NCBI GenBank assembly: GCA_035084275.1
Contig: CM068770.1
Coordinates: forward strand, 4,030,001 to 4,094,000
Reading direction: 5' to 3'
Source: Hydrolagus colliei
Taxonomy: Eukaryota
Length of the DNA: 64,000 bases
Shown here: positions 20,203 through 47,214 of the stretch, piece after piece
Layout of the letters: the number at the start of each line of letters is the position of its first letter
Numbering within the stretch: position 1 is the first letter of the stretch
The notes under the pieces: model-generated
Told to the model about the DNA's origin: nothing
Database searches by the model: none
What the model saw: only the letters and a program-made list of their open reading frames with translations
Position numbers and translations under genes: made by a program

Positions 20203-20269
20203 TTGCTTCCTCTTCCTGTGACACTTCGCCTGGTAATTTGCGGTCTGGCTGGTAGTTTATCTCAGTGCC
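20203..20269 (-). CDS. Gene A cytoplasmic exon (phase 0 to 1): GTEINYQPDRKLPGEVSQEEEA
   Basis: Acceptor GTTGTCTGTCAG, donor GCAA|GTGAGT, in frame with the 20988-21045 exon. Confidence 0.7.
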
Positions 20270-20274
20270 CTGAC

Positions 20275-20560
20275 AGACAACAACAACAACGACGACGAGG
20301 ACAACAACTGAGATTTACACACAGCGCCCTCCTCTCCACGCCCGACAGCGTCCCAGAGAGCTTCCCGATCACAGGGTTCCCAGGGCCGTGAAGGGAGAGA
20401 GGGAGAGAGGGAGGAAGAAGGTGACTGAAAATAGGAAAGGAGTTGGAGGGGGTGGGTATGGTCCAGACCCGGTGGAGTGAAGGCAACGGGTGCTGTTGGA
20501 GGTCAGAGGAGGTCAGAGAGGTGGGAGAGCTGAGGTGGGGGGGGTGGGGGGGGTGATGCA
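20275..20560 (-). mobile_element. Degenerate L2 LINE 3' fragment
   Basis: (CAA)n tail, CAGCGCCC...GACAGCGTCCCAGAGAGC, purine-rich body. Confidence 0.65.
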
Positions 20561-20987
20561 GAGGAGTGAAGGGATTTGAATACCAACGTGAGAATCTTGC
20601 AATCAATACTGCGGTGTCCTGACAGGCAGATGCCTTAGGAAACAGCAGATATAATACTGATGCATGACTGCATGTAACATTTGAACCCTGGCCTCTAATC
20701 TCGGCCTTCATCAGTTGGGAGTTTAAAAGGTATTTTCTCCCCATTGTTGTTCGTTCTCTTGTTGATGCTGTGTCAATGGGTTTTATTTTTCCTGCAGAAT
20801 TTCAGCTTCAATCAATCTGAGACGGAGAGAACTCAGGCACCGTTTAGAAACAAAGTGAGTCACAACAGCATCTCGCAGCAGAAGTAGATCGAAATCACCT
20901 CTCTTATTTTATTTTCCATAGACTTGTGTGTGTGTGTGTGTGTGTGATACATTGAAAGGTTGATTCGAACCAAGTTTCGAGCCTCAC

Positions 20988-21045
20988 TTGTGTGTGTTCA
21001 GGCAATCGGATGCTCTGACAAGTGGAAGGAATGGAATCACCAGGG
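20988..21045 (-). CDS. Gene A cytoplasmic exon (phase 2 to 0): PGDSIPSTCQSIRLPEHTQ
   Basis: Acceptor TTGTTGTTTTGCAG, donor CAA|GTGAGG, phases match both neighbours. Confidence 0.72.
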
Positions 21046-22039
21046 CTGCAAAACAACAATCTTTTGTTTCGGTAGCAGCCGGAGACGGAACCTGAACCAG
21101 ATTCTGGCTTTGATATTAATGAGGATTTATCAGTGGCGTTCTGTGTCGGGGTGGGCGGATTTGTGTGTCTGTGCGTGTTTGTCTGTGTGTGTTTAGTCTG
21201 TGTGTGTGTGTGTGTCCAGCTCGGGTCTGAAACACTGACCGTCCAGCGCCTTGGGATGTCCTCCTGACGTGAAAGACGCTATACAAGTGTCATTTTGTTG
21301 TTGTGTGCGTTTGTAAGAAATACTAATTCTCGCATTTGATATCACACGGTTCACCTCTTCTCGATGTCTCGAAGCACATCACGGAACATACTGTGGAAGT
21401 GAATTGACTGTATATTTCTGGGCGAATCGCGGCAATGTACACGAACAGAGAAACACACATACGCAGATACACACAAGCATGCTATCACAACAACAACAAC
21501 AACAAAGTACACTTGTATAGCGCGTCAGAGTCGACTGAACAAAAAGTAGCCTTAATGATCCTTGCGTTCGATATGGAGCCTTCACACTTCTTCAAGAGTT
21601 CAAACTCCATTGAACTCACACCACTGTCTGATTCTAGACATGACAACAGTCCCACCTGGGCTTGGCTGACACGCTTCAAAAAGCACTAACGTATAACCAT
21701 TTGCAAACAGAACACGATCGAGGGAGGGTGTGCAAGATTGATAAAAATCAAACCCTTCTCTCTGCTGAAAGAGCGAAAGGTGAACGAGATCAAAGGAGAT
21801 GTCTGTCTCGTTGTGTCTTTGGGAAGACTTAAATTGGTTCATTGTAAAATGTAACATCACATTTAAACCACCTTTGTTGGTTCTGGACTACAGTCACGTT
21901 CTCTGCACCCCCCTCCCCCCCCCACCCACCCCCTTCTCGCTCTCTCCCTAAACCACATCAAACTCCGCCAATCTCAAATGCTCTGAGACTCTACCCTTCC
22001 TGATATAAAGGCAAGTTGTTGTTGCTGTAGCCTGCGATT

Positions 22040-22368
22040 ATAATAATAATCCTTACATTTGATACAGCAGCTTTTCACGTCTTCTAGACATTTCAAAGCG
22101 CTTCAGAGAATAAACTGTAAAGTGAATCGACTGTATTGTTGTGGGCGAAACGCGGCAGCCAATTGCTCGCAGCAGCGTCCCCCACAAACAGTCGTGGATT
22201 GAAGTGACTGATTTTATTATCGTATTTTTGTTTGGAGGGATTATTACCAAGCGTGTGTGTGTGTGTGTGTGTGTAGTAAGGAAACATGCCCATAGTTTCG
22301 CTCTGACCCGCCTGGATTCGATCACACTCTGTAAGGCGAGCGCTCTAACTGCTGAGCTACAGGACTCC
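22040..22368 (-). mobile_element. tRNA-derived SINE, full length
   Basis: All modules present on the minus strand. Confidence 0.9.
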
Positions 22369-22544
22369 CTCCCCCAGCAGTTTCTTATTTAACCCTGTGC
22401 ACTGTTATCTCTGAGGATTTCAACTGTGTCGTTGAACAGCTTTCCTCTGCCTCACCCTTAAAAAATACGCAGTCAATTCGTTTCACAGTGTGCTCTGTGA
22501 AGCACTTTGAGACTTCTTTGTTTATCAGGGCTGGGAACCATCGT

Positions 22545-22640
22545 CGAGGCTGACAGTCCAATGCAGTACTGGGGGGGCGCTGTGTTATTGTGCGTGATGC
22601 CGTCCTTTGATTGAGACATTAACGTTACAGATCCCATGAC
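22545..22640 (+). mobile_element. DeuSINE-type fragment
   Basis: GGCTGACAGTCCAATGCAGTACTGGGGGG...GATGCCGTCCTTTGATTGAGACATTAA...GATCCCATG resembles, from memory, the Deu domain of AmnSINE1/SacSINE1. Confidence 0.6.
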
Positions 22641-23272
22641 GCAATCCGAAAAGAGAGATTAACACGGTTAAATCCTATAAAAGCGCTTTCGAAGCCAACC
22701 TCCTGCCTCAACAGAGGCCTGGCTGAACGCTAACCGCGTTAGTTTGCACCAATGATCCATTTAAAGGGTTAACGTTTCCAAAACAGAGAGAGAAAAAATA
22801 ATTAGACGGTTTCATTTCTCTCTCTCTCTCTCTCTCGCTCTCTATCTCTCTCTTCCCCTCTGCGTTTTTTTTTCTCGAAAACATCTCCACGCAGGTGAAG
22901 TTAAGAAGCAATGACAAAGAAAGAGAAAACGTGGTTAGAACGCACGGGTCTGTATTCTAATCCTAACGCACGAAGCGCGCGTTTGAACTCACAACGGTTC
23001 ACGCGAGAGAGGGCTGAACACTCAGCGCAGATTTCCTGTAGACGTGACACTGCCTCTCGTCGCCTCTCTGCAACTTCAGCCTTATCCAGTCCCTCTTTGA
23101 CTTATCGTTATGATTGTTACTACTGTCCTATTACTCTTGTCCCGTTAGTGAAGTGGCTTCAATGGGTTTGTAGAGGAACAGAAGAACCCAATACAGTGTG
23201 GGTCTCAGTGTCTCGGGACGTCTCACTCCCCCCCCCCCCCCCCCCCCCCACCCCCACCCTCCCCCGATTCAC

Positions 23273-23421
23273 TTTCGGGCAGTGAATTTCTCTCTCAGGT
23301 CCTGTCTTGAGATGTGGACTGCGGCGTATTCCGTTTCTTCAGGTACCGTTGGATTGTGGTGAGATAAACCCGTCGAGTCTCGAGACCTCGTCTTGATTTC
23401 TCTGGCTGCAGTGTACGGGCT
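23273..23421 (-). CDS. Gene A cytoplasmic exon (phase 0 to 2) with ITSM-like TEYAAV
   Basis: SPYTAARE...PEETEYAAVHISRQDLREKFTAR; acceptor TTTGCAACAG, donor AA|GTGAAT; motif at 23317-23334. Confidence 0.82.
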
Positions 23422-23968: not shown

Positions 23969-24075
23969 CTCGGGTTGGTGGTTGCCACCTCTGGGTCTCG
24001 GTCTCCGAATGATGATGTCCGCGTAGGACACTTCCTCCTCTTCCTCGTGTTTACGGTCATCAAAGGAAACGGAGC
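23969..24075 (-). CDS. Gene A cytoplasmic exon (phase 1 to 0) with ITIM VSYADI
   Basis: Acceptor TTTTTTTTCTCTCTCACCCCCAG, donor GAG|GTACAG; SVSFDDRKHEEEEEVSYADIIIRRPRPRGGNHQPE; motif at 24014-24031. Confidence 0.87.
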
Positions 24076-24183: not shown

Positions 24184-24243
24184 TCTGTGCTGGTGTCTGT
24201 GGATTGTGAAGAGCTTTCTTCTGCACTACTGCGTATACTGTAT
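24184..24243 (-). CDS. Gene A cytoplasmic exon (phase 1 to 1) with ITSM-like TVYAVV
   Basis: Acceptor GGAACTTGCAG, donor CAGA|GTAAGT; DTVYAVVQKKALHNPQTPAQ. Confidence 0.85.
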
Positions 24244-24780: not shown

Positions 24781-24809
24781 CTGTTTCATTGCTGTGATTG
24801 TTTCCTGGC
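24781..24809 (-). CDS. Gene A cytoplasmic micro-exon (29 nt, phase 2 to 1): PGNNHSNET
   Basis: Acceptor TCTTTCCCCCTATTTTAG, donor CAG|GTATGT, phases fit. Confidence 0.75.
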
Positions 24810-27730: not shown

Positions 27731-27758
27731 CTCAGCTCGGTGGCCACAGCTCCCGGCT
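27731..27758 (-). CDS. Gene A first cytoplasmic micro-exon (28 nt, phase 1 to 2): EPGAVATELR
   Basis: Acceptor CTTTCTCGTTACAG, donor GAG|GTAAGA; bridges the TM exon and the 24781 exon in frame. Confidence 0.75.
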
Positions 27759-29992: not shown

Positions 29993-30091
29993 CTTTCAGC
30001 TGCCGTTTCATTACGCAGTAGATGGAAATCAGCACAGACACCACCACAGCTACTGCCAGCGCAGGCAACAACACACAAAACAGCTTCGAGC
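29993..30091 (-). CDS. Gene A transmembrane exon (phase 1 to 1), uncharged TM
   Basis: Acceptor TTCTCGTTCACAG, donor AAAG|GTGAGA; GSKLFCVLLPALAVAVVVSVLISIYCVMKRQLK. Confidence 0.9.
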
Positions 30092-30851
30092 CTGTGAACG
30101 AGAATGTAGCAAAAGTCACTTGCCGACAAACGAGGGCCCCCAGAGCGTGGTGGTTAGAGCACTCGCTTCGTGTGTGGGGGCCACGGGTTCAATTCCTGGT
30201 TAGGGCGAAACTTTTGGAAAGTTTCTTTACTCCACACACACACACACACACTCACACTCACACACGCTATGTTCACCTTGCAGTAAACAGGAACCTAGTC
30301 ATTAGTCAATCGGTGAATGGCGTTCCGGGGAATAGGTAATAATCTCTTCTAAGAGTCTTGGAATCTAAGACTGTTTGTGGGAAACTGCTGTGCGCCATTG
30401 GCTGCCGCGTTTCGTCCACAAAATGTAGTCAATCCACCTCACACTATATTTTGCCTACCAAATAAATACACAGTCGATCCATTTTATGGAATATTCTGTG
30501 AAGCACTTTGAGGCAGGCTAGAATATGTGCTGGATCAGATGCAAGGATTATTCTTATTCTTATTATGAGGCGTGTTTACCGGCAATTGATCGCTGATCTA
30601 TTACGATCAACAAATCCACTCATTTCAAAACTACTGCGAGAGCGCAGAACATTAAACCAACTCGGTTCAAAGCCTTCGTAAATGGCGAGTTGACTCTTCT
30701 CTAGATCTTTGTGCTTTACAGACAGGTTGAGATCTGTTTTGAGTCTCACTATAACAGCACTCTGTGTCTCTAACAGTCGCGAGGAGCCTTAATAAATTGG
30801 TCATTTCAATCCACGACTGTTTCGTGGGGATGACTACTGCGCCCACGCCAA

Positions 30852-31184
30852 ATAATAATAATAATAATCCTTGCATTTGATATAGCGCTTTTCACATCTG
30901 ATCGACGTCTCAAAACGCTTCATAGAATATACTGTGAAGTGAAGTGACTGTATACGTGTGGGCGAAACGCGGCAGCCGATTGCGCGCAGCAGCGTCCCCC
31001 CCCACAAACAGTTGGGGATCGAAATGACCAATTTTTATTACTGTGTTCTTTTTTGGAGGGATTATTATTAGGCGTGTGGAGTAAGGAAACTTGCCCAAGG
31101 TTTCGCCCTGACCTGGCTGGATTCGAAACACAGGTCTCACGCTTGTAAGGCGAGTTGCTCTAACCACTCAGCTACAGGAGCTCC
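30852..31184 (-). mobile_element. tRNA-derived SINE, full length
   Basis: Close to consensus; ends GCTACAGGAGCTCC. Confidence 0.92.
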
Positions 31185-31403
31185 ACGAGTGCAACGCTTC
31201 GAGACGCCCTCCAGACCCGAAAGACGCTTCATCCAATGTATTTTGGATAAAAATAAAACAACTTTATTATATTTAAAATAGATCAGATATCCTGAGCAAC
31301 TTTGTCTGAGACTCAGGAAGAGAGAACTCAAGGAACAAAATGTATCTTGGCAATTTGCCTGAACGACTTGGCAGTGAAACTTAATGGGTTTTATTTTACT
31401 TAC

Positions 31404-31715
31404 CCACAGCACGTAATCGCGTGAAAACTTTGGACCTATTCTGCCCGTGGATGTTGTTCGCCTCACACAGGTACGTTGCCTGATCCTGCGACTGTAGAAA
31501 ACCGGTTTGGTTTATGGTAAGCGTCCGCTGAGTTTGGTTTGTCTCCGCGAGTTTCTCTCCGTCTTTAATCCACGTCAATGTGCACCCTGGGTTACAGTCC
31601 ACGGAGCAGGTCAGTTCTAGGAAGGAGCCCTCAGAGACAAAGACGGAGATGTTCGCAGGCTGATATGTGACTTGTCCGTTTGTCCTGTACGTGATGACAG
31701 GTTTCTGCGGAGCAT
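31404..31715 (-). CDS. Gene A Ig domain 3 exon (C2/I-type, Siglec-like)
   Basis: 312 nt, phase 1 to 1; YAPQKPV...VSEGSFLELTCSVDCNPGCTLTWIKDG...DQATYLCEANNIHG; CCCTATCAG acceptor, GTAAGT donor. Confidence 0.92.
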
Positions 31716-31798
31716 CTGATAGGGAAACGGAACAAGAGCTCTTATACAAAACATAAGATAAAAATAATAATAATACTTGCATTAATATAGCGCCTATA

Positions 31799-31913
31799 GA
31801 GTCCTGCTCACTGGTTAGAGCTCTCGCTTTACAAGCGTGAGACCTGTGTTTCGAATCCAGGCAGGTCAGGGCGAAACCTTGGGCAAGTTTCTTTACTCCA
31901 CACACACACACAC

Positions 31914-31959
<46 letters not shown>

Positions 31960-32182
31960 GCCGAATAATATTCCCTCCAAAAAAGCATCTATAATAAATT
32001 GGTCATTTTCAATCCACGACTGTTTGTGGGGGGGACGCTGCTGCGTGCAATTGGCTGCCGCGTTTCGCCCACAACTATACGGTCAATTCACTTTACAGTA
32101 TATTCTATGAAGCGCTTTGAGACGTCTAGAAGATGTGAAAAGGCGCTTTAGCAAATACAAGTTATTATTAGTATATTATTAT
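31799..32182 (+). mobile_element. tRNA-derived SINE, full length
   Basis: All modules present; inverted relative to the 30852-31184 copy. Confidence 0.92.
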
Positions 32183-32343
32183 TATCAAAATGCTTTACAG
32201 AATAATAAAGTGTATATTTTGTAAGCGAAATGATGGAACAAAAGAGCCTGTTAGACGAGGACAGAGGACAACAGGAATTGTTAGAAATAAATACACTTCC
32301 AGATTGCGGGAAGACAGTTTAACATGTAATTGGTGAGACTTAC

Positions 32344-32622
32344 ACTCGATACACAGTCTGACTTCAGTCCGAGCTACGGCTGCGTGAACATTGGTCTTGG
32401 TGCTGATCTGACACGCACACACACTCCCATTGTCTCTCATTCCGGCAGTGATGGGAAGTTGGCTGGTGAACAATCCAGAGTCCTTGGAGACTGAGCCACT
32501 GATATTCTCTGCGTGCAGTTCACAGGTGAAGGCGAGGTTCATGAAGGGAGATACCTGAGCAGAGCAGTTTAGGGTAGACCTACGTCCTACAACCAGGACG
32601 GACGAAGAGATGCGTGGAGTGT
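32344..32622 (-). CDS. Gene A Ig domain 2 exon (C2-type, resembles Siglec domain 2)
   Basis: 279 nt, phase 1 to 1; DTPRISSSVLVVGRRSTLNCSAQ...FTSQLPITAGMRDNGSVCACQI; TCTCTTCTGCAG acceptor, GTAAGT donor. Confidence 0.88.
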
Positions 32623-33099
32623 CTGCAGAAGAGAAGGTTCAACGGTATGAAAGTACATGAGTCTGTCGATGTCAGAGGTGATAACGCTGTCACTTTGCAG
32701 CAATGCTTCACAATAATAATACTGCAATAATAATCTTTATAATTGGTACAGTGCGATTCATAGAGGGAGGACATCTCAAAGTGTTCCACGGGATTTATTG
32801 GAGGGACTGGCTGTTTGTAAGAAGAGAGGGGCGGCCCATTCGCATTAAATGTGCCACAAACTGCCCTAAAGTGAATAACCGAGTCTGTTTTTTATCAGGA
32901 GATCGCAGAGCCAGGTGGGGAGGGAAGGCAGTGTGAAAGTAAAATGATTTGGCTATTTCTGTAATAACTTTCATGTGCAACAGCAGTTGCAAACCCAAAG
33001 TCTGACGACATTTTGAGAGGGTGAACTGCGCGAACGACACGAGGTGAAAAACCTATCGCTGTTGTCGATAGCACGTGTTTTAGAATAGGAACACACACA

Positions 33100-34464: not shown

Positions 34465-34469
34465 CTGGT

Positions 34470-34575: not shown

Positions 34576-34854
34576 GACTGTGAGTGTGTGTGGAGGACGG
34601 CATCAAGTCTGTCATAACGCAAATGTACCCAGATTAAACTAACGAGGATCAACAGTGATTCATGTTAAACATTCGTTTGTGCTCTAATCACACGCAAACC
34701 AAATTCAAATAAAAAACTTTGGTTGTTTCCCATTTCAGATCAATGTGACATTTTCAAGGAGGAATTTCTGTGAAGCTATTTCTCTATTTTATTGTTAAAC
34801 GTTTCACTGAAACCACGACACTCTCGCTTGGCACACGTCGCTCCTTATCACAAT

Positions 34855-35075
34855 AATAATACTGGTAACAATCCTTGCATTCAATATAGCGGCTTTTCAC
34901 CTCTTAATCGACGTCTCAAAGCGCTTCACAGAATATACTGTAAAGTGAATCGACTGTATATTTGTGGGCGAAACGCGACAGCCAATTGCGCACAGCAGCG
35001 TCCCCCACAAACAATCATGGATTGAAATGACCAATTTGTTTTATTATTGTGTTTTTTTTGGAGGGATTATTATTA
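34855..35075 (-). mobile_element. tRNA-derived SINE lacking head
   Basis: Central block and tail. Confidence 0.85.
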
Positions 35076-35923
35076 GGATTCCAACTGTGTGTGCCTCTTG
35101 ATGTCACATTAGGAAGATTTTAACTGTAAAGAAAACAACTTTAACTGTCGCAACTTGAGGATCCAGTCATTCGGAAATCATCTGCAGCCAAAATCAGTCA
35201 TTTCAAACACTGAACATTTTAGCAGTTAAAATTCAATAAAACTTTTGCTTAAAAGATGAGAATTTGGTCACTCAGTCCACGACTGTTTGTGGGTCACTGA
35301 CATCTGTGCGCAGTCGGCTGCCGCATTTCACCCACAACATATACAGTCAATTCACTTTACGGGATATTGTGTGAAGCACTATGAGACGTCTCGAAGACCT
35401 GATAAAGCGCTGTATCAAATGCAAGAATTATTATTATTATTAAACACGTAAAAGCTACCGAAAGATTCAATTTGTAAAGGATTTTCAGGACCTCCATATT
35501 ACACACTCGCATTGTGATAAATAATTTTGATAAAGATTTTGGTACATCAACTTTTTCGCTTTGCCAAGAGGTCTCAAAGTGTTTCAGATGATTTACCGGA
35601 GTGGAGCTGCTGTAGCTCAGAGGTTAGAGCACTCGCCTTACAAGCGTGAGACCTGTGTTCGAATCCATGCAGATCAGAGCGAAACCTTTGGCAAGTTTCC
35701 TTACTTCACACAAAGCGCTTCCGTGAAGCGCTTTGAGACGTCGATAAGATGTGAAAAGCCGCGATATCAAAGGCAAGGATTATTACTAGTATCATCACTG
35801 TAAAGGGGGTTCGGTGGACGAAACGCGGCAGCCAGTTCGTGCGCAGCGGCGTCCCACAAACAGCCACGGGAACCCTTTGAGTGGCCGTTGAACCGCGATC
35901 AGTCGCATGGATGAATCTCAACC

Positions 35924-35970
<47 letters not shown>

Positions 35971-35975
35971 CTCAC

Positions 35976-36024
35976 CATGTGCCTCAGCCAGCACAGTAAA
36001 GAGCAAGCTCGGAATTAGCAACAT
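35976..36024 (-). CDS. Gene A signal-peptide exon: MLLIPSLLFTVLAEAH(G)
   Basis: GCGATG start, 49 nt, phase 1, donor G|GTGAGT, hydrophobic leader. Confidence 0.88.
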
Positions 36025-36129
36025 CGCAGAGGCTAAACTGTGATGACAATTCTTTATTCCAGGCGTTTCCCAGGCTGTGCCAGTGCTGTCTGAGGCTCGG
36101 TGCAGTGAACAAACACACATCTCACTCTG

Positions 36130-36206
36130 GAGGAAGCCGCAAAGTGCAAATTCGACTAAATGCCATTGTTTCCGACCCAGATTAGGAGGAAGTTACGTGA
36201 GGAAGG
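36130..36206. promoter_or_regulatory. Cluster of ETS/PU.1-type GAGGAAG sites upstream of gene A
   Basis: GAGGAAG at 36130, 36186 (GAGGAAGT) and 36199, 100-180 bp upstream of the ATG. Confidence 0.45.
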
Positions 36207-36489
36207 GAGGAGAGCTTTTTTTTTCTTTTTCTTCTTCTTCGGTGCAGTGCTGTCTGTCTGTCTGTCTTGTCTGTCTGTCAGGATGTGATAGGACCTGTTA
36301 ACAGTACTGATCCAAATCTGGTAGCAGTTACATATACACACCCACCACACACTCTCACACACACATTCTCTCTCTCTCACACGCACACACATACACACGT
36401 GCACAGAAGAGGTTCTCAGTCCCTCAAAGGCCAAAAGTAGCCAACGCGACAACCCAATCTGAGTTACAAGCCAAATGTCAACCTGCCAC

Positions 36490-36830
36490 AGCCTGTTCCA
36501 CTTTTTTCTCTTGAATCAGAAAACTGTGGGTTCGAGCTTTGAACTCAGAGACAAAGGCTGACGCTCTCACTGTTGGGGAGAGACCCGAGGCAATACCGGA
36601 GGGGTGATCTGCAGAATCACAGCCGAGGTTCCGTCTCTGTGTTGAGGTTCATGTTACAGAGATCACATCATCTCAGAGTGAGTGTTACTCCCCCGTGTCT
36701 TGGCCAACGATCCCTCAGATGCTCCTGAAATAGACGACCGCTATTTATCCGCCCGCAGGTTGGCGACAAAGTGCACAGTCACTACACTTATACGGTGAAT
36801 CCCGTCAAGCGCCTGGAGGTGGGCGTCCTG
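36490..36830 (+). mobile_element. Degenerate DeuSINE-type element
   Basis: TGAATCAGAAAACTGTGGGTTCGAG head, GGCTGACGCTCTC, AGCCGAGGTTCCGTC, CCCCGTGTCTTGGCCAA, L2-like tail remnant. Confidence 0.55.
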
Positions 36831-37984
36831 GTTCGAAAGGCCGTTGCATCCAATGCGAGGACTGTTTCTATTATAATAATATATAATAATATTCCTTGCG
36901 TTTGATGAAGCGGCTTTTCACATCTTATCGATGTCTCAAAGGGCTTCGCAGAATATACCGTAAAGTGAATTGACTGTATATTTGAGGGCGAAACGCGGCA
37001 GCCAATTGCACACAAACAGTCGTGGATTGAAAATGACCAATATTTATTACTGTAGTTTTTTTGGGGACAGATTATTTCTGAACGTGAGGACATCTTATCT
37101 AGTCTCGTATTCCTTCTGACTCCTTAGTCCCTGTGATTGTCCCTTCTCTCTTACGCAGACCCTCAGGGCTCAACTAGTCTATGTTTTGGTGTGTGTACTC
37201 GAATACGGATGACTTCAATCAGAGGGATCATGTAGAAGAGGGGTAGGGGGTGGGTGGGGGGTCAAGGATGGAGTCTTGGGATACACACACTCATCACCAT
37301 GTAGGGACAGAAGGAGAAACCATTTGTAGAGACAAAATGATGTGGAGACCTTCCCTTCGCCTTGTCCCCATATTTAGTGCCTTGGGACGTCCTCCCAATT
37401 TGAAAGGCGCTGTACTATCTTACAGTATTATTATTCTGCAACTGGATTCCTGTAGCTCAGTGGTCAGAGCACTCGCCTTACAAGTGAGAGAGCTGGGTTC
37501 AATTCTAGGCAGGTCAGGGCGAAACCTCGGGCGAGTATCTTTGCTCCACGTGCCTAATAATAATCCGTCCAAATATAACCTACAATAAAAAATGTATTCA
37601 TCGCGATCCACATCTGTTTGTGGGCGACGCTGCTGATGTGAAGCCATCTCAATAGCAGCAGCAGAAGTTCCAGCACTTTGATTCCCACAGCCCACAGTCG
37701 CAGCAAGAAAAACTACAACTCCCAAGTTGCTTTCTGACAACATTCGCAGCCCTGAACATCGAGGGCTTTCTGTTAGACTGGCCTCTGGTGGATTTCAAGT
37801 GTCATGCGGCACACTTAAAACGATCCATTTAAACCCAGCGAATTACAGCGCCTCGCACTCAAAACGTGATAGCAGCAATCCTTGAATTTGACACAGCTCA
37901 TTATCACGTCATCCAGACGTCCCAAAGCGCTTCGCAAGAATAGACTGTGTGAAGTGAATGGACTTTTGTATTTTGATTCCAAGC

Positions 37985-38180
37985 TCCTCACTCTTGTGTT
38001 CGAATCCCTCCACTCTCCCTCAAATCACCACCCCTACCTCTCTGACCTCCTCTCTCCTCACAACGGCAACCGTTGCATTCGCTCTACCGGGTCTGGCCTC
38101 CTCCTTGTCCCCCCCCGAATCCTCGGAGGCCATGCCTTCAGCCACTACGCCCCCGAGGCTCTGGAACCCCCTCCCAACAT
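37985..38180 (+). mobile_element. L2 LINE ORF2 fragment
   Basis: Encodes HHPYLSDLLSP...IRSTGSGLLLVPPRILGGHAFSHYAP. Confidence 0.8.
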
Positions 38181-39542
38181 TCGCTCTGAAAAGCGCTGTA
38201 TCAAAATGCAAGGATTATTATTGTCCTGGGAGCCAATTTGCATGTGTCGTGTCCTGAACTACTCATATACGTAATTACATACATATGTAAATCCGAAAAT
38301 ATTATTTCCAAAAAGAATTCAGTCTCATTTGCACTTGAAAGCATCAGTTATTTCTGCTTGCTCCGTCTCCCTCGGGAACTCGATCTACAGATTTGACTTG
38401 TACCGATCGTTCCTCGTTGTCCTTTATGCTGATCTGCAGGTTCTCTTAGCTCCTCGCGTGTGGCCCGGGCAACGAGGAGCCAGGGATTGCTTGCCGGCGG
38501 TGGATAAAGTCCAGGAGGTATCTCTCTCCAGTGATTTCAAGTCCTGTCAAGTCCCAATTTCAACCTGGTGAGAAGCAGACTTCGGCTGAGCTTCACTTTT
38601 TCTTGCTGATTTACTCCATCTGGTGGTGAGAGTGTATTTAAAACAAACTGCCACTAATAATAATAATCCTCGCATTTGATTTAGAGCTATTCACGCCCTC
38701 TAGGCGTCTCAAAGCGCTTCACAGAATAGACTGTAAAGTGAACTGACCGTACATTTGTGGACGAAACGCGGCAGCCAATCACGCACAGCAGCGTCCAACA
38801 CAAAGTGACCAATTTATAATATTTTTTCCGAAGGAATTATTAGCCCCGGAAGAATAATCTGCCGGACGACGAACAGCCGGGTTGCTGCTAACCGCTCGGT
38901 AGCCAGAGGGGTGTGGAGTGAGGAACGTTTGTGGGCAAAAGGCTTCACTGGGACATGGCATCCTAGGACAGACCAACACTTGACCATCAGGGAGGTGGAA
39001 GGTGTTACTAGACGGACTTTGATCTTAACTCACTCCTACTGCTTCAGTTGCCTGGTAATTTTCACCTGTCTCCCTATTGCCCTCCTCAGGTGATAAGTCA
39101 CTTGATCAGTCGGTAAATAAAAAAAACGTAACGGAGACAGCTGTGATCGGTGTCTGTATGTATGTGTGTGTGTGTGTTGTGTGTGTGTGTGTGTGTGTTG
39201 TGTGTCTGTGTGTGTGTGTGTGTGTGTTTGTCTAGAGTTTGCTCACCAGATGGTCAGATGGTCGAGGTGACAATTTACAGAGTTTCCCTGGTGATGAGCC
39301 AGTCTGTGGCTCGCCCAACAAACCCATACCATCACATCTGACAAATTAACGTTGCACAGAATGGGTGAAAAGCTCTTTGGCCAATGCGAGGCAGGGCTGA
39401 TGTGGGGTGGTGGGTCTGTGGCCTGCCGGATTCTTAGGTATCTATTTAAAGAGCGAGGGGGCAATGGGGTGGGGGGGGTATGAGTGGGGGGAATGGGACG
39501 AGTTGGTCGATCAATAAAAGAACCAGCATGAAAATATATAAT

Positions 39543-40143
39543 TGTAAGAATACGGCTTTATCCGGTATTTAGAAAGCAATTCTATTTAATGAAGCACAAT
39601 CAATCATTACCCGAGTAACACCACAATACAGCGCTTCAAATAAAACAATACTTCCAGAGGGGTGCTTCTGCTGGATCGGCACCGATCTGGTCTCTCTCTC
39701 TCGAAGACAAGGAAGCCGCCTCTGACTAACACGGTCACTTGTTTATAGTCCACAGTCCGAGTGTCATACACATGATGTTATCGTGGACTCCTCTTGCACA
39801 TCTCGTGGGTGTCACACGTCTCGCCATCCTTTCCCGCACCTTGCCCTGGTTTCTCCGAAGGGCCCCCCCTACCCGATGATTGTGTCATCTGGGTGTCTTC
39901 CTGCCCCATGTACTCATTATTCCTCCATCCGAGGTCTGTTCCTTGTCTGCCCAGTACACAATACACTTATCTCGTGATCACAAAGTCACAACTTCTGCAA
40001 AAACAGGTTACACACGACACAACACTTCTCCACTCGTCCCTGGTTCTATTTTGAATCGTCTGTGGTTTCCACACTCCCCAACGTCTATCTGGCTTCTCCT
40101 TATTCTGCACTTTACCAATTCGCTGGACACTCTAAGTTACGCA
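39543..40143 (-). mobile_element. Possible solo LTR
   Basis: Minus strand shows TATAAAC (about 39745), then ATTAAA (about 39590), then a TTCTTACA end at 39543; no TSD found. Confidence 0.3.
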
Positions 40144-40187
40144 CGTACGCAGTAGCAAAAGCAATGTTAATATAAAATATAAAATCT

Positions 40188-40437
40188 AACAATAATAATC
40201 AATGCATTTTATGTAGCGCTTTTCATGTCTTCTAGACGGCTCAAAGCGCTTCACAGAATATACTGGATTGAAATGACCAATTTTATTATTGCGTGTGTTT
40301 TTGGAGGGATTATTATTAAACGCGTGTGTGTGTGTGGAGTACGGAAACTTGCCCAAGGTTTCGCCCTGACCTGCCTGGATTCGAACACAGGTCTCTCCTG
40401 CTTGTAAGGCAAGTGCTCTAACCACTGAGCTACAGGA
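40188..40437 (-). mobile_element. tRNA-derived SINE, internally deleted
   Basis: Head and tail present; central block missing at CAGAATATACTGGATTGAAATG. Confidence 0.85.
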
Positions 40438-40519
40438 TTATCTAGCGCTCTGAGGTGCTATTACTTGCTATATAAATGCAAGTTGTTGTTGTTGTTCTTA
40501 TTCTTGTTCTGGTCGTAAG

Positions 40520-40602
40520 GTCTGGCTAAAGGGTTAATGAACCGAAAACGTCAACTCATTTCCCACTCTCCATAGATGCTGCCTGACCTGCTGCGTGTTC
40601 CT
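40520..40602 (+). mobile_element. Degenerate Penelope-like terminal fragment
   Basis: GAAAACGTCAACTC...CTCTCCATAGATGCTGCCTGACCTGCTGCGTGTTCC matches the 33768 copy. Confidence 0.6.
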
Positions 40603-40841
40603 GTGTGTGCATAGGAAACAACGCTAACTCAGGACCAGTGGTCAGACACACTTTATTTTTGGGTCGTATACCAACTACATCTCACTCGCTCTTCCTTCCT
40701 GTTTGACACAAAGCCTCTTCCCAGCCACGCACGCGAACTACGGTAATCGCTTTGCACTAGAAGCGGTTCTTAGGCTACAGAACGCAAGCAGAACAATGGA
40801 GATATTTTGAGGAGCTTTGGACTTTTTAACTGAGCGAGGCG

Positions 40842-40890
40842 ATGTGGGTTTTGGCAATCGCTCTCTCTCTGGTGTTGGTGGGTGTGACAG
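40842..40890 (+). CDS. Gene B signal-peptide exon: MWVLAIALSLVLVGVT(G)
   Basis: GCGATG start, 49 nt, phase 1, donor CAG|GTGAGT; ETS-type CTTCCTTCCTG at 40691. Confidence 0.9.
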
Positions 40891-41330: not shown

Positions 41331-41499
41331 ATATTCTGAAAATACTTTTGCCGTAGTTTCGAACTGTCTGTCAGCACAGTGGCTGAGGATCTCAAACGGA
41401 CCTGGACAATGTCAGGTTTCATGGTGTTTTGTGCTTCAAGACAAAGTAAACACAGTATTTTAATGGACAATCATGTTTAACTTCTAAAATTGTGGTAAT

Positions 41500-41820
41500 A
41501 AACAATCCTTGCATTTGATATAGCGCTTTTCACAGCACGAAAGACCTGTTTTCGCTGTCTCACAGCGCTTCACAGAATATACTGTAAAGTGAATTGACTG
41601 CATAGTTGTGGGCGAAAAGCGGCAGCCGATTGCACACAGCAGTGTCCATCCCCCACAATTAGCTGTAGATGGAAAGAACCAATTTATTATTGTTTTTTTT
41701 TGAGGGATTATTGTCGAGCGTGTGGGGTAAGGAGACTTGCCCCAAGATCTCACACTGCCTGAAATCGAACCTAGGTCTCTCGTGTGTGAAGCCAATGCTC
41801 TAATACTGAACTACATGGCT
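41500..41820 (-). mobile_element. tRNA-derived SINE, diverged full length
   Basis: Inverted partner of the 40919 copy in the same intron. Confidence 0.85.
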
Positions 41821-42108
41821 CCAAACCGTGGCAATAAATGACAATAAACAATCCTTTTATTTGGTGTAAGTGCCTCAAACATCATCATACGATTTACTGT
41901 ACTGTGTAGTGACTGTGCATTTTGTAGTGAAACACAGTAGCCAGATTTGCTGTAAGATTCTACGGTTGTATGATCACGGAACATTGCTGAAGCGTTCTAT
42001 ATTTTATACGATGAACTCGTACCGTAAAAGAGATGGTGAGCGCACAGTAATTAATGTCGCTCATTTCACATCAACATCTCGGCTTCACAGATTGTTTTAT
42101 CTCACCAG

Positions 42109-42429
42109 GTGGTGTGATCCTAGAGGTGACTCAGCCTCGTGAGGTCAGCGTATGGAGAGGGGAATCGGTCACGTTAAACTGTACATTTAGTTACACTGGA
42201 ATTCAAAGTGACTGGATTTTTACACGCTGGTTTCCCAAACCTCGCTTTTTCCTGAAGAATTATGTGTTCTGCACTGAACACACAGAGATTGTTAGCTGTT
42301 GGATAACCGCACAGATTGCAAACGTCTCTCTTGAACAATCTAATACAACATATTACTGTGAGGTCACCATCACAACAGAAAACGGGACTGCGGATAAAAC
42401 AGGAGGAGGGACACGGTTACATGTTTCTG
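42109..42429 (+). CDS. Gene B V-type (germline VJ) exon
   Basis: 321 nt, phase 1 to 1; 311/321 nt identical to the gene A V exon; CTCACCAG acceptor, GTAAAG donor. Confidence 0.93.
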
Positions 42430-43144
42430 GTAAAGTTTCTTTATTATGGTAAATTAGTAACAAGGGCTTATGCTTGATTAGTACACCAACACAGAAGTTC
42501 CACTTGGGTATAGCCTTCAAGTTTTGGGGGAAATATCTGAAATTCAATCTTACTTCTATATTTTTGTTTAAAAAAGACTTACAGTAAGATAGCTCCCAAA
42601 GGCTGAATTTAAGAACTGGTCACAATTCTGCATGGTTACGTGTTGATGGTAAAGTTTTATTTATTATGATAAACTAATATCAAGGGCTTCGGCTTGCTTA
42701 GCACACCAGCAAAACATTATTGAGGTCAGGCTAATGGGGCTATAGCTGATACGTGTGATTCTGTTGCCTTTCTTGAATCACTGGTTAAGCACAGAATAAT
42801 AATGCTAATAATTATAAAAATAATGTTAATAATAATAATATAAGAAGAAAAGGAAGAAAAAATATTACAATCCTGGCATATGATACAATAAATTATCACT
42901 GCCCTTCATAATATATTCCTGTGAAGCGCTTTGCGACACGATTAGACGCTATATCAAATGCAAGGATCATTATTAATTTAGTGTTATCACGTTGTTGAGC
43001 CATCTCAAAGCGCTTCAAACAGTGAACTATAAGGTGGATTGACTGTGTGGTTGGGGGGGGGGGGGGGAGGGTGGGGGGGGGCGACACGGAGAGAATACGT
43101 GTTGCGGAAAGGAGCGTGACGTTCGTTTTGCTTTGACGTTTTAG

Positions 43145-43486
43145 TCCCGGATTCGGCTCCGACCGTCCGGCTTACACAGGGAATATTGAGAGCAGATGTC
43201 AGATCCTTTGTGCGGTGCGAGGCCTGGGGATTCTCTCCTCGAGACATCTCGCTGAGCTGGCAGCACCTAGGACACAGAGTCCCCAGCAACACCCAGGCTC
43301 CTCGGGCTCACAGATACACCAGCAAACTGCTCGAGGGCGACAGCGCGGACGATGGCACCTTCCACATCATCAGTGAACTGTGGTTCATCCCAACCCCCGG
43401 AGATCACCAGACAGACTGCGTGTGTCAAGTCAAACACTCCACAAGCGATGTGCCCCTATACGGACGTATATCACTGAACGTGAAAT
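43145..43486 (+). CDS. Gene B Ig domain 2 exon (C1-set-like)
   Basis: 342 nt, phase 1 to 1; PDSAPTVRL...CEAWGFSPRDISLSW...DDGTFHIISELWF...DHQTDCVCQVKH; GTTTTAG acceptor, GTGAGT donor. Confidence 0.92.
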
Positions 43487-44350
43487 GTGAGTCTGTTACA
43501 GTGCGTTAATCGCGTTTAAATTGATTGGAAGTTCAGCAGTGGTACGTGTACATTGTTTACTCCACAGGCCTACTCATAATCCGTTAAAAAACCCCACAAA
43601 ATTGGTCATTTCAATGCACACTGCCGAGCGCAATTGGCTGTCGCGTTTCGCCCACAAAATATACAGTCAATTCAATTTACAGTATATTCTGTGAAGCGCT
43701 TTGGGACGTCGATAAGACGTGAAAAGCGCTATATCAAATGTAAGGATTATTATTATTATCCCACATCCAATACAGTAGGATTTAGATTTTTTTTGGTGTG
43801 GTTTTAATCAGTTCCTTGGCAGTTAACTCTCACTATAGTAGGTTGACATTCATTCTTCACTGAGAATAGAGTGTGTGTGTGTGTGCATGTGTGAGAGTGA
43901 GTGTGAGGACAGACTGAGTGTGAGAGTGACTGTGAGAGTGATTACCGGAAAAGTTAAAATAAAAGTGCATGTCCCATGCATAAAGTCTCTCAGCATAAAG
44001 GAGTACATCATATAGTACGACCCAGTTAGTATAAATATAAGACAGAGGCAAGAAAAGGGAAAAGAGTGGTTAGGAGAATTCTTTTAACGCACAGACTAAT
44101 TCGGTCATGAAATGTCTTGCCAAGTAAATTGGTGCAGATCAGAATCCATTTGTGGGTTGTGAGTACATTGACGGGTACAAGACAGAGAGAGAGAGAGAGA
44201 GATGGTTGAAGGTGGGGAGAGGGTTGGGGGAATTGGGATCGATTGGGATCCAGGGCAATGGGATTGAATGGACAGAGAATGGGTGCAATGGGTTCGTTCC
44301 TCCCACGCTTGTAAATGTCTACACTTGTCTCTTACGGCTTTTGATTCCAG

Positions 44351-44668
44351 ACGCTCCGCAGCTCTCCGTCGCTTACCGGATCTCGGCGTCCGATCGGCTG
44401 CGGCCGGTGGAGCGAGGGACCCTCGACGTGGCCGAACGCTCGTTCCTGGAGCTGAACTGCACCGCGGACAGCCACCCGGCGTCCACAGTTACCTGGGAGA
44501 GGAAAGACGGCCGCGGCGGAAGCCTCCAGTTCGACACGGCAGTCGGCAGTGTCGTCTGGAGGAGGTCGGAGCTCAAGGCGACGGATGTGGGCATCTTGTG
44601 GTGCAGAGCGGACAATGAATGCGGCACAAGGACAAACTCTGTCGCGGTATATACGTCTCACCCCATTA
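44351..44668 (+). CDS. Gene B Ig domain 3 exon (C2/I-type, Siglec-like)
   Basis: 318 nt, phase 1 to 1; YAPQLSV...VAERSFLELNCTADSHPASTVTW...DVGILWCRADNECG; GATTCCAG acceptor, GTAAGT donor. Confidence 0.92.
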
Positions 44669-45174: not shown

Positions 45175-45258
45175 GTGCTTTCCCTTTTCGTGCCGTGACA
45201 GTCCCCATCTTCCTGGTCACCGTCGCCTTGTTGTTGATCTGGAGCAGGAAGTCCAAAG
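45175..45258 (+). CDS. Gene B transmembrane exon with Arg
   Basis: SAFPFRAVTVPIFLVTVALLLIWSRKSK; TTTCCACAG acceptor, AAAG|GTAAAG donor; Arg codon at 45189-45191. Confidence 0.9.
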
Positions 45259-45427
45259 GTAAAGCTCACTAAAGCATTTTGACACTGAAGCCGATTTTAC
45301 GTTGGGTTTTTAATGCAAGTTGTTGCGTTCAGGCACTCTTCCTCCTACTCCACCCACTCCCCCTGCCCTCCTACCTTTCCCGATCCCGGTGTCCGCTGAT
45401 TCCTATTTGCTCTTGTTCCATTTGCAG

Positions 45428-45452
45428 ATCCGTTTTGCTTCTCCAAATACCG
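45428..45452 (+). CDS. Gene B cytoplasmic micro-exon (25 nt, phase 1 to 2): DPFCFSKYR
   Basis: TCTTGTTCCATTTGCAG acceptor, CG|GTAAGT donor. Confidence 0.78.
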
Positions 45453-45499
45453 GTAAGTCAGGATTTCAGTCTGGCATTTGATACGGTTGTCGGCATCAG

Positions 45500-45630
45500 A
45501 GGAACGTGGAAGGAAATCAAGAACAGTACATTGGGACAGATGGAGATAGTGCAACAGGAAGGACACAGGTTGAAGATTGTCGAGGGCAATTTTAGGACTG
45601 AAACCGCAAAGTTATTCCTTTATTCAGAAC
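45500..45630 (+). mobile_element. Degenerate CR1 ORF2 fragment
   Basis: Encodes GHRLKIVEGNFRTETAKLFL, like the CR1 C-terminal GHRFKI motif. Confidence 0.6.
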
Positions 45631-45635
45631 ACCTT

Positions 45636-46515
45636 CAACAACAACAACAAATTACATTTATAGAGCGCCTTTCACGTCGGGAGGACGTCCCAAGGCGCTG
45701 CACAGGAGGCGTGTGACCCGAGCTGAGAGGGGAGTGTTTGGGAAGGGGTGAGACACGAAGGGGAGGTCGAAAAATTCGGGGTGGAACAAAAGGCACGATC
45801 GAAGAGGAAAGTCTTCAAACCGGCCTTGAAAGAGGAAAGGGAAGAGATGAGACGGAGGGATTGAGGGATGGTATTCCATAGGGTGGGAGCGGAGAAACTG
45901 AAGGCCCGGCCTCCGATGGTGGGGCGGTTCGGGCGGGGGGCTTGGAGCAGGCCAAGTCCTGTTGAACGGAGGGTCCGGGTGGGCGTGTAGGGGGAGAGTA
46001 GATCGGTTAAATAGGGCGGGGCAAGGCCGTGTAAGGCCTTGTAGGTGAGGACGAGGATCTTGAACTCGATCCTCTGGAGGATGGGGAGCCAGTGGAGACG
46101 GGCGAGGGTGGGGGTTATATAGTCGCGGAGGCGGGTGCGGGATAGTACATGGGCTGCAGAGTTTTGAATGACCTGCAGCCTGTGAATGGAGGAACTGGGG
46201 AAGCCGACGAGGAGAGTTTCCATAGCCCAGCCGTGAGGTGATGTACGCGTGCACGAGTGTTTCAGCAGCGCGGGGGGTAAGATAGTTGCGGAGCCTGGCA
46301 ATGTTGCGCAGGTGGAAATAAGCGGTTCCGGTCAAGGCGCGGATGTGGGGGAGGAAAGAGAGTTTTTGATCGAACATGATGCCGAGGTTCCTGATTGGCT
46401 TTGTGAGGTGGAGAGTGCAGCCTTGGATATTGAGACTGGCAGCGCCCGATGTGCGGAGGCGCTGGCTTGAGCCGATCAGGAGGGCCTCGGTCTTACTCAC
46501 GTTCAATTGCAGGGG
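45636..46515 (-). mobile_element. L2 LINE, 5'-truncated, ORF2 C-terminus with a frameshift
   Basis: KTEALLIG...RNLGIMFD.KLSFLPHI...AYFHLRNIARLR / LQVIQNSAAHVL...LHWLPILQRIEFKILVLTYKALHGLAPPYL; complete 3' tail with (GTT)n. Confidence 0.95.
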
Positions 46516-46809
46516 GGGCGTGGGTTTAAAAATTAATCCTTCCCCCAAAAAATGTAAAAATTGGTCACTTCAATCCACGACTGTTTGTGGGACACTGCGC
46601 TCTACGCCTTGTTACGTCTTCCCGACAGGAAAGGCGCTCTATCAATGTAATTTTGTTGTTGTTGCGAATAATTGGTTGCTGTACTTTTCCAGTGTATGTA
46701 TTCTGCGAAGCACTTTGAGACGTCTCGAAGGTGTGATAAGGGTGCAAGGGTGGTGGTTATTGGAATTATTATTGATTAAGGGAGGTTGAGGCCATGAGAT
46801 TATAATGAT

Positions 46810-47050
46810 ACTAATAATCCTTGCGTTTGATATAGCGGCTTTTCACATCTTATCGACATCTCAAAGCTCTTCACAGAATACACTGTAAAGTGAATTCACT
46901 GTATATATATTGGTGGGCGAAACGCGGCAGCCAATTGCGCACAGCAGCGTCCCCCCCCCCCCCCACACAAACAATATTGAAAATATTGGATTGAAAATGA
47001 CCAGTTTTTCTTATCGTGGTATGTTTTGGGGGGACGGATTATTATCAGGC
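46810..47050 (-). mobile_element. tRNA-derived SINE lacking head
   Basis: Central block and tail. Confidence 0.85.
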
Positions 47051-47192
47051 CTTATTTCACAATACGTCCCAATAGATATTATTTCACAATACGTCTGTGT
47101 GATGAGTGGTTAGTAGGGTTTGTGTTCTTCTTCATCCAAGCCAACACTGGGGGAAACGTCCTTGTTGCTCTCCTCTCCTCACTGCCTTGTAG

Positions 47193-47214
47193 GAAGTCCT
47201 CTTGCGCCACATGA
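47193..47214 (+). CDS. Gene B last coding exon: (R)KSSCAT*
   Basis: Strong acceptor CTCTCCTCTCCTCACTGCCTTGTAG; phase 2 fits; total CDS 1161 nt = 386 aa plus stop. Confidence 0.7.

Follow-up and report, generated by a model that had tools for sequence, protein, structure and literature searches.

The locus examined here raises the question of how two neighbouring genes of the immunoglobulin superfamily (IgSF) can be nearly identical in one domain and only distantly alike in all others, and of what kind of receptors they encode. The genes, here called A and B, lie in a stretch of 64,000 nucleotides of the Hydrolagus colliei genome (contig CM068770.1, forward strand, 4,030,001 to 4,094,000), which is referred to below as the window; it is free of N runs, and coordinates are those of the window unless another locus is named. 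Our analysis led us to conclude that A and B are probably a head-to-head pair of receptor genes from an ancient IgSF family that has no name. The predicted architecture of this family is a VJ-type V domain followed by a domain 2 of C1 type, a domain 3 of C2/I-set type and a transmembrane (TM) segment. The ATG of gene A is located at 36024 on the minus strand and that of gene B at 40842 on the plus strand, and these divergent ATGs are 4,818 bp apart, in agreement with the 4.8 kb given in an earlier note made from the letters of the window. The structures of both genes likewise uphold the anatomy that this note had described, that of a paired inhibitory and activating IgSF locus.

Comparison of the V exons of gene A (34144 to 34464, minus strand) and gene B (42109 to 42429, plus strand) showed 10 differences over 321 nucleotides and 8 over 107 amino acids (96.9% and 93% identity, respectively), leaving 99 of the 107 residues the same in the two genes; the eight differences are those that the earlier note had counted. 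The inverted match between these exons scored 803 bits in blastn, which is far beyond chance, and the remaining inverted repeats of the A/B region were all copies of short interspersed elements (SINEs). The homology is confined to a block of about 550 bp with an overall identity of 92.5%, made of the V exon, 12 bp upstream of it and approximately 205 to 214 bp of the following intron. In gene A the block runs from 33930 to 34476 (minus strand), taking in 12 bp from intron 1 as well as about 214 bp from intron 2, with both borders sharp, and its counterpart in gene B runs from 42097 to 42632 (plus strand). The intronic part of the block is about 90% identical, while the synonymous divergence (dS) of the V exon is approximately 0.03 and its last 170 nucleotides or so are nearly identical. 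Outside the V domain the amino acid identity between A and B falls to 29% in the leader, 25% in domain 2, 34% in domain 3 and 28% in the TM segment.

Because the V block is sharply bounded and the two genes are 25% to 34% identical elsewhere, we interpret their near-identity as the product of exon-limited, non-reciprocal gene conversion over this block of about 550 bp. On the same comparison the pair is not a young duplicate, and A and B appear as old paralogues outside the V exon. The lower divergence of the V exon than of the adjoining intron hints at more than one exchange. An assembly artefact was ruled out, as the arms differ at 10 exon positions, the flanks are diverged and an independent assembly of Callorhinchus milii has the same arrangement. 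The changes between the V exons consist of eight nonsynonymous and two synonymous substitutions (nonsynonymous to synonymous rate ratio, omega, of about 1.2), which are too few to show selection, and four of the eight amino acid differences are located in residues 33 to 40, a region resembling complementarity-determining region 1 (CDR1). A SINE is present next to the block in gene A (34479 to 34572, minus strand), and its (ATT)n run ends 12 bp upstream of the acceptor of the V exon, exactly where the A/B homology has its 5' border.

The locus of C. milii (L001) then offered a second holocephalan lineage for comparison. The protein predicted from gene A is 58% identical (E = 2e-163) to the C. 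milii protein P0001, which has the same ten-exon structure, is the sole close database homologue of A and bears the automatic name "sialic acid-binding Ig-like lectin 6" in its NCBI gene model. The window is collinear with the C. milii locus at 65% to 74% identity, not only in the introns but also in the 3' flank and in a portion of the intergenic region; the latter (36025 to 40841, 4.8 kb between the ATGs) holds SINE copies, and its A-proximal part is the conserved one. This collinearity bears out the cartilaginous-fish origin proposed in the earlier note and narrows it to a holocephalan. For gene A, comparison of the window with C. milii gave a dS of 0.35 to 0.52 and an omega of 0.5 to 0.7. 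Upstream of the C. milii A gene and on the opposite strand, we found a remnant of gene B at approximately 3750 to 4661 of L001 (minus strand), an unannotated pseudogene made of the last 133 nucleotides or so of the V exon, with an in-frame stop, and the frameshifted start of the C1 exon; the rest of the C. milii B gene seems to have been deleted. The position of this remnant opposite the C. milii A gene implies that the head-to-head layout predates the split of the two holocephalan lineages.

Comparison of the last 117 nucleotides of the V exon showed that window A and window B are 100% identical and that C. milii A is 89.7% identical to its own B remnant, while the cross-species pairs are 75% to 78% identical, the C. 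milii remnant and window B being at 77.8%. Between the same borders, the B arm of the window can likewise be aligned with the A gene of C. milii. From these shared borders and the likeness within C. milii it follows that the block was homogenised independently in both lineages. We therefore consider it very unlikely that the V domains are alike through a single recent exon duplication or shuffling into a pre-existing gene instead of recurrent conversion. A single transfer would account for the window on its own and for the sharp borders, and the divergence of about 10% in the intronic part indicates that the main event was not very recent; the C. milii pattern, however, requires an independent exchange in two lineages, and an exon dS below the divergence of the adjoining intron suggests more than one event. 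The most informative point of the analysis is thus this exon-limited conversion, which took place independently in C. milii as well; in that species the activating partner has decayed, and so it appears to be evolutionarily dispensable.

Gene A was assembled as 10 coding exons encoding 478 amino acids, with canonical AG/GT splice sites at every assembled exon and a single unbroken frame, and encodes, in order, a leader, a VJ-type V domain, two more Ig domains, an uncharged TM segment and a tail of 130 amino acids. On the minus strand, exon 1 (35976 to 36024) contains the ATG and the leader (MLLIPSLLFTVLAEAH-G), ends in a phase 1 donor and is 82% identical to the leader of C. milii P0001. Exon 2, the V exon described above, matches the V-set of Pfam and carries the canonical cysteines of the B and F strands, an extra cysteine pair and a J-like G strand, GGGTRLHV. 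Exon 3 (32344 to 32622) encodes domain 2 of A type, which clusters with the A-type domain 2 of skate and sawshark, and exon 4 (31404 to 31715) the membrane-proximal C2/I-set domain, with Pfam matches to Ig_2, Ig_3 and I-set at E values of 1e-14 to 6e-12. The uncharged TM segment, followed by KRQLK, is encoded by exon 5 (29993 to 30091).

The V-C2-C2 order proposed for gene A in the earlier note was thus supported for domain 3 but not for domain 2, which has no Pfam match and, in the alignment of the family, has lost C1 hallmarks such as the tryptophan of the C strand. We classify this domain from its sequence as a degenerate relative of the family's C1-like domain 2 and not as a typical C2 domain.

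The cytoplasmic part of gene A begins with two micro-exons, which were located solely via the alignment to the orthologous C. milii locus. The first (exon 6, 27731 to 27758; 28 nucleotides, EPGAVATEL) is 83% identical in nucleotides to an annotated C. milii exon, with conserved splice sites, and the second (exon 7, 24781 to 24809; 29 nucleotides, RPGNNHSNET) aligns to a C. milii exon; both keep the frame. A blind search for cytoplasmic exons that assumed phase 1-1 had given spurious candidates only, and one of the micro-exons ends in phase 2. The three consecutive exons that follow contain, in frame, the motifs TVYAVV, VSYADI and TEYAAV that had been recognised before. Exon 8 (24184 to 24243) carries a membrane-proximal motif, DTVYAVV, resembling an immunoreceptor tyrosine-based switch motif (ITSM) and conserved in C. 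milii, skate and teleost relatives; exon 9 (23969 to 24075) carries an immunoreceptor tyrosine-based inhibitory motif (ITIM), EVSYADI; and exon 10 (23269 to 23421), which is 65% identical to the C. milii C-terminus, carries the distal ITSM-like motif ETEYAAV and the TGA stop. With the micro-exons included, the tail amounts to 130 amino acids and not to the 170 or more that the earlier note had estimated. The uncharged TM segment and the tail, with one ITIM (VSYADI) between two ITSM-like motifs (TVYAVV and TEYAAV), identify the predicted product of gene A as an inhibitory-type receptor.

Gene B encodes a leader, a V domain, a C1-set domain, a C2/I-set domain and a TM segment with a boundary arginine, in five open exons with canonical splice sites, phase 1 junctions and an intact frame of 371 codons, so that in both genes the junctions keep frame, as had been claimed. 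On the plus strand, exon 1 (40842 to 40890) contains the ATG and the leader (MWVLAIALSLVLVGVT-G) and is followed by the V exon. Exon 3 (43145 to 43486) is a C1-set exon of 342 nucleotides (CEAWGFSPRDISLSW ... CVCQVKH) that is 39% to 43% identical to the C1 domains of the B types of sharks and rays; its match to the Pfam C1-set (PF07654) reached 28 bits for a cutoff of 21, which bears out the C1-like domain proposed for this gene. Exon 4 (44351 to 44668) encodes the membrane-proximal C2/I-set domain, 41% identical to that of sawshark P0015. Exon 5 (45175 to 45258) encodes the TM segment SAFPFRAVTVPIFLVTVALLLIWSRKSK; in the TM sequence FPFRAVTVPIFLVTVALLLIW the arginine sits at the outer boundary, and this arginine and the VPIF motif are conserved in the B types of sawshark, stingray and bamboo shark. 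The assembled sequences thus agree with the earlier reading of an uncharged TM segment in A and an arginine-bearing one in B.

Two ends are predicted for gene B. A candidate terminal exon (47193 to 47224, plus strand; GSPLAPHDQL and a stop) has a good acceptor and no similarity to elasmobranch B-type tails, and read-through of the donor of the TM exon would give a protein ending in SRKSKGKAH, with GKAH and the stop at 45259 to 45270. A search for a tail exon by similarity to shark and ray tails and by enumeration of acceptors gave nothing convincing; the tail of roughly 20 amino acids mentioned in the earlier note probably makes use of the candidate exon at 47193 to 47224. Either predicted end gives gene B a short tail devoid of tyrosine motifs. 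With the conserved arginine at the outer boundary of its TM segment and this short tail, the predicted product of gene B is of the activating type. Open frames similar to the 3' end of open reading frame 2 of a long interspersed element (for example ...LEQRRLRGDLIEVYKIMRG...) are present on the minus strand at 63374 to 63745 and at 45658 to 46548, the second just 3' of the TM exon of gene B.

The decay of gene B in C. milii raises the alternative that gene B of the window is a dying or decoy copy, kept open only by conversion from A, and that the locus acts as a single inhibitory receptor. The reduction of the C. milii orthologue to pieces of the V exon (with a stop) and of the C1 exon (with frameshifts), the candidate status of the terminal exon and the omega of about 1.2 between the V exons all point in this direction. 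Four of the five open exons, however, are outside the conversion block and beyond rescue by A, the C1, C2 and TM exons align over their full length with functional-looking B types of sharks and rays at 39% to 48% identity, and the arginine of the TM segment is conserved in these B types. We therefore find it unlikely that gene B is such a copy, and retain the paired-receptor interpretation.

A homologue search, which the earlier note had proposed, found relatives in cartilaginous fish and in teleosts but no characterised orthologous pair. A word-indexed search retrieved only P0001, P0002 and P0140 and missed the B types, which were recovered later, when the C1 exon of gene B was used as the HMMER query against 1.84 billion representatives. 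The B-type relatives comprise P0015 from sawshark, with the name "sialoadhesin-like", P0027 from stingray ("syg-2-like"), and P0048 and P0132 from epaulette shark and bamboo shark, respectively, each called "Siglec-10". All are collinear with gene B over V, C1, C2 and TM, have the same boundary arginine and VPIF motif and a short tail without an ITIM, and are 39% to 48% identical to gene B domain by domain. The A-type relatives are little skate P0002 ("Siglec-13") and sawshark P0140, both of which keep the three tail motifs, and Albula, Scleropages and Conger, which are basal teleosts, have relatives with a V-C1-C2-ITIM arrangement. In the skate relative and in those of Albula and Scleropages, the three tyrosine motifs keep the positions that they have in gene A. 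Beside the canonical disulfide, all members from chimaera to teleost have an extra cysteine pair in their V domain (C'-D region; VFCTEHTEIVSCW and CIPDIAPGGFKHC are examples), and this pair is a possible signature of the family.

Trees were then compared for domain 2 and for the V domain. The domain-2 tree separated an A clade (window, C. milii, skate and sawshark) from the B types and the teleost sequences with a support of 98/96, and a forced holocephalan clade was rejected by the domain-2 data in the approximately unbiased (AU) test (p = 0.0165). The V tree, on the other hand, followed lineage: the elasmobranch V domains of both types formed one clade (97/96), window A was paired with window B (97/96), and a B-type clade was rejected by the V data in the AU test. 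This discordance implies that the A and B lineages predate the divergence of chimaeras and elasmobranchs and that the V exon has moved between them since. The locus has, in sum, two of the marks by which paired receptors maintained by gene conversion are classed, namely adjacent genes with a near-identical predicted ligand-binding domain and a divergent remainder, and V domains homogenised within the species beside orthologous relations elsewhere, as seen in the identity matrix, the trees and the AU tests.

Several database models of these relatives need correction. In the skate Leucoraja erinacea (L002), tandem A-like V-d2-d3-TM copies are located at 11545 to 16471 and 30301 to 36582, with V domains 87% and domains 2 96% identical, and the NCBI model P0002 may be a chimeric prediction in which the ectodomain exons of copy 1 are joined to the TM segment and tail of copy 2. 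In the stingray Hemitrygon akajei (L003), a B-type V exon is present at 7445 to 7792, upstream of the model P0027, which begins with unrelated sequence and misses its own V domain. Besides these at least two faulty models, we flag the names "Siglec", "sialoadhesin", "syg-2", "tapasin" and "NCR3" as misleading for this family.

The automatic names (Siglec-6, Siglec-10, Siglec-13, sialoadhesin-like and MAG-like) suggest that the locus is a true Siglec pair, of which both members bind sialylated glycans. Pfam searches with A and B gave V-set, C1-set (B only) and, for domain 3, I-set, Ig_2 and Ig_3. Among the structures of the PDB, domain 3 matched contactins, MAG, Siglec-8 and CD22, and the tail of gene A, with VSYADI and a distal TEYAAV, resembles those of CD33-related Siglecs. 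AlphaFold models of the sawshark B type (mean predicted local distance difference test score, pLDDT, of 79) and of C. milii A (mean pLDDT of 69, with a confident ectodomain) were compared with Foldseek, and both gave Ig1-3 of MAG (Siglec-4) first (E = 1e-19 and 3e-16 for the A-type and B-type models), followed by CD22, nectins and SIRP-alpha, at 15% to 20% identity. These structure matches thus show a generic resemblance between proteins with three Ig domains.

The V domain of a Siglec has an intrasheet B-E disulfide bond instead of the canonical B-F bond, and an essential arginine of its F strand binds the carboxylate of sialic acid. The V domains of A and B, in contrast, keep the canonical cysteines of the B strand (TLNC) and F strand (YYC), and in their F strand, TYYCEVTI, a glutamate follows the cysteine where the arginine is expected, this residue being a valine, alanine or lysine in the relatives. 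They also have a J-like GxGTxL G strand, and searched alone the V domain matched the V domains of Ig lambda, T-cell receptor (TCR) alpha and SIRP-alpha in the PDB, with no Siglec V domain and no NKp30 chain among the matches. Domain 2 is of C1 type, which is absent from Siglecs, and the structure matches stand at 17% to 20% identity with a root-mean-square deviation of 12 to 15 Å, nectins and SIRP-alpha being nearly as good. The likenesses of domain 3, of the tail and of the Foldseek ranking to Siglecs, and of the head-to-head arrangement with N-terminal conversion to SIGLEC11/16 (PMC5701461), are thus outweighed, and we consider a true Siglec pair quite unlikely.

The closest analogue of the locus is nevertheless the human SIGLEC11/SIGLEC16 pair, in which the genes are head-to-head and 9 kb apart, conversion of the N-terminal exons took place separately in each of the primate lineages and the activating member is frequently a pseudogene (PMC5701461). 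In both systems, as also in SIGLEC5/14, an ITIM receptor and a receptor with a charged TM segment are head-to-head within a few kb (4.8 kb here). The N-terminal exons predicted to bind the ligand are homogenised per lineage, function is often lost in the activating partner (SIGLEC16P in humans, the B remnant in C. milii), and the membrane-proximal C2 domains and the tail motifs are similar. The two systems differ in that the V domain here is of VJ type, with a canonical disulfide and no sialic-acid arginine, and is followed by a C1-type domain 2, and in that the converted tract covers one exon (about 550 bp) instead of several exons over some 2 to 3 kb. Here the arginine is located at the outer boundary, whereas Siglec-14 and Siglec-16 associate with DAP12, and the A and B lineages predate the split of chimaeras and elasmobranchs, whereas SIGLEC16 arose within primates.

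When the V-C1 part of gene B was compared with solved structures, SIRP-alpha was the best match (2wng, E = 3.7e-13, residues 21 to 169), followed by SIRP-gamma (E = 9e-11) and shark UrIg2 (9dmx, E = 1.9e-8, residues 85 to 173). Gene B shares with the SIRPs a V domain with a J-like G strand (GGGTRLHV) followed by a C1-set domain, and the SIRPs are also a paired inhibitory and activating family (SIRP-alpha and SIRP-beta1). The C1-set of human SIRPs carries a motif, GFSPRDI(S/T)L(S/K)W, that is common to the C1 domain of gene B, and the tail motifs of SIRP-alpha, of the ITYADL/TEYASI type, resemble VSYADI and TEYAAV of gene A. Domain 2 of gene A, however, has no C1-set match, and the V-C1-C1 order of the SIRPs is not that of A and B, since domain 3 of both genes is Ig_2/Ig_3/I-set, that is, C2/I-set and not C1. 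The boundary arginine in place of a lysine in the middle of the TM segment and the extra conserved cysteine pair of the V domain also distinguish them from SIRPs.

A VJ domain in one exon followed by C1 is likewise a point in common with UrIg, UrIg2, PRARP and NKp30. NKp30 consists of a VJ domain and a TM segment with an arginine and has no C domains, whereas gene B has C1 and C2 domains between V and TM. PRARPs carry ITIMs and have no third C2 domain; a 2019 account by Fu et al. is said to describe PRARP as a VJ-C1 receptor that does not rearrange and has an ITIM in its tail. UrIg and UrIg2, reported from elasmobranchs only, contain C1 domains in strings and are not ITIM/arginine pairs (PMC12227049), while A and B differ from them in having one C1-type domain and then an I-set/C2 domain.

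Since VJ and C1 form the module of dimeric antigen receptors, we also considered whether the ectodomain is a dimerising, antigen-receptor-like unit, as a B homodimer or an A/B heterodimer comparable to Ig/TCR, UrIg2 or PRARP, instead of part of two opposed receptors. UrIg2 forms homodimers (PMC12227049) and, as a V-C1-C2-C3 protein, is among the best PDB matches, and the V domain itself best matches Ig lambda and TCR alpha. The overall best match, however, was SIRP-alpha. This receptor has the same V-C1 module and needs no V-V pairing to bind its ligand. Moreover, domain 2 of gene A has lost hallmarks of C1, and no interchain cysteine is evident in the membrane-proximal stalk. A dimeric unit of this kind is in our estimation highly unlikely, and two opposed receptors remain the preferred reading.

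Lower vertebrates have other IgSF receptors in ITIM-bearing and charged-TM forms, namely NITRs, LITRs and the MDIRs of skate, and none of the three was among the matches of the searches with A and B. NITRs have a V domain with a J-like motif, in V plus I or V-only arrangements, and are not known outside bony fish; the ectodomains of LITRs and MDIRs are of C2 or CD300/pIgR-like type, with no VJ-C1 module. CEACAMs were ruled out, as the canonical disulfide is missing from their N domains. Neither gene therefore appears by its sequence to fit a named, characterised family, PRARP being set apart by description, and comparisons with Pfam, the PDB and Foldseek confirmed the earlier statement that a family could not be assigned. 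The novelty claimed earlier was sustained in that the family has no characterised member and was lower than implied in that A- and B-type homologues are already annotated under automatic names. In a search of the literature on paired receptors, SIRP, Siglec and PRARP, with subscription journals outside its reach, no description of this family in cartilaginous fish was found.

The predicted structures suggest how the pair would work. A and B would see the same or a very similar ligand through their V domains, A dampening and B triggering leukocyte responses. Phosphorylated ITIM and ITSM motifs recruit SHP-1/2, and the phosphorylated tail of A would recruit phosphatases of the SHP type. An arginine near the outer leaflet of the TM segment pairs with the aspartate of adaptors of the FcR-gamma type, for example in macaque activating KIR (PMC8102735). 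B would signal via an aspartate-bearing adaptor of the FcR-gamma/CD3-zeta type with an ITAM (immunoreceptor tyrosine-based activation motif). Together A and B may set a threshold, or B may counter agents that exploit A; a role of B as a counter-measure to pathogens exploiting A would fit the SIGLEC11/16 pattern as well as the loss of B from C. milii. Signalling, the shared ligand and an arms race with pathogens are what we infer from the motifs.

Several points weigh against a two-receptor interpretation or limit it. The V differences cluster near the CDR1-like region, and A and B may consequently not bind identically. The splice junctions and the coding end of gene B are sequence predictions, and this gene, a pseudogene remnant in C. 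milii, could be on its way out here despite its intact frame. The functions proposed for A and B are drawn from mammalian motif rules, and the groups submitted to the AU tests were chosen after the trees had been seen. Finally, the head-to-head layout is established for holocephalans only: in stingray and in epaulette shark, no head-to-head partner was found within approximately 7 to 10 kb upstream of the B type, flanks that are too short to exclude one.

The paired-receptor principle is known, as are the genes under their automatic names; what is new is an uncharacterised family, its distinctive VJ-C1-C2 architecture and the recurrent, exon-limited conversion in a holocephalan. Innate immunity in mammals is marked by paired receptors maintained by conversion (KIR, LILR, SIRP, Siglec-5/14, Siglec-11/16 and CEACAM), and the same design in a holocephalan suggests that this evolutionary logic was at work early in the jawed vertebrates or was reached there by convergence. 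As a tentative wider reading, these genes may belong to an undescribed and very old gnathostome family (VJ, C1, C2 and either an ITIM/ITSM tail or an arginine-bearing TM segment) of chimaeras, sharks, rays and basal ray-finned fishes, whose inhibitory and activating lineages would have coexisted since before the split of chimaeras and elasmobranchs while repeatedly exchanging V exons. Because a VJ-C1 module of the antigen-receptor and SIRP type is joined to C2 domains and a tail of the Siglec type, the family could, as part of this same tentative reading, be a surviving relative of the stock behind the SIRPs and possibly behind the non-rearranging VJ-C1 genes. The VJ-C1 module is also of interest where relatives of antigen receptors that do not rearrange are sought (UrIg, UrIg2, PRARP and NKp30).

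Searches of the remainder of the window by tblastn with A and B gave no further family members, and no flanking marker genes were identified within the window. Two long open frames on the plus strand, at 12586 to 13839 (417 amino acids) and 13937 to 14338 (133 amino acids), are located in a G-rich stretch and have no Pfam match; they may either be chance open frames or represent exons of a gene nearby. Dense tRNA-derived SINEs of a family common to C. milii are present at 30851 to 31190, 41496 to 41823, 43618 to 43759 and many other places, in addition to the copy at 34479 to 34572 (minus strand). An isolated Ig V/I-like exon is present at 55340 to 55632 (minus strand; SVTLTCEKP...VQWKY...SGLYICRV), with weak Pfam matches to I-set and V-set; it has no relation to A and B, and a further IgSF gene located downstream of B is its probable source.

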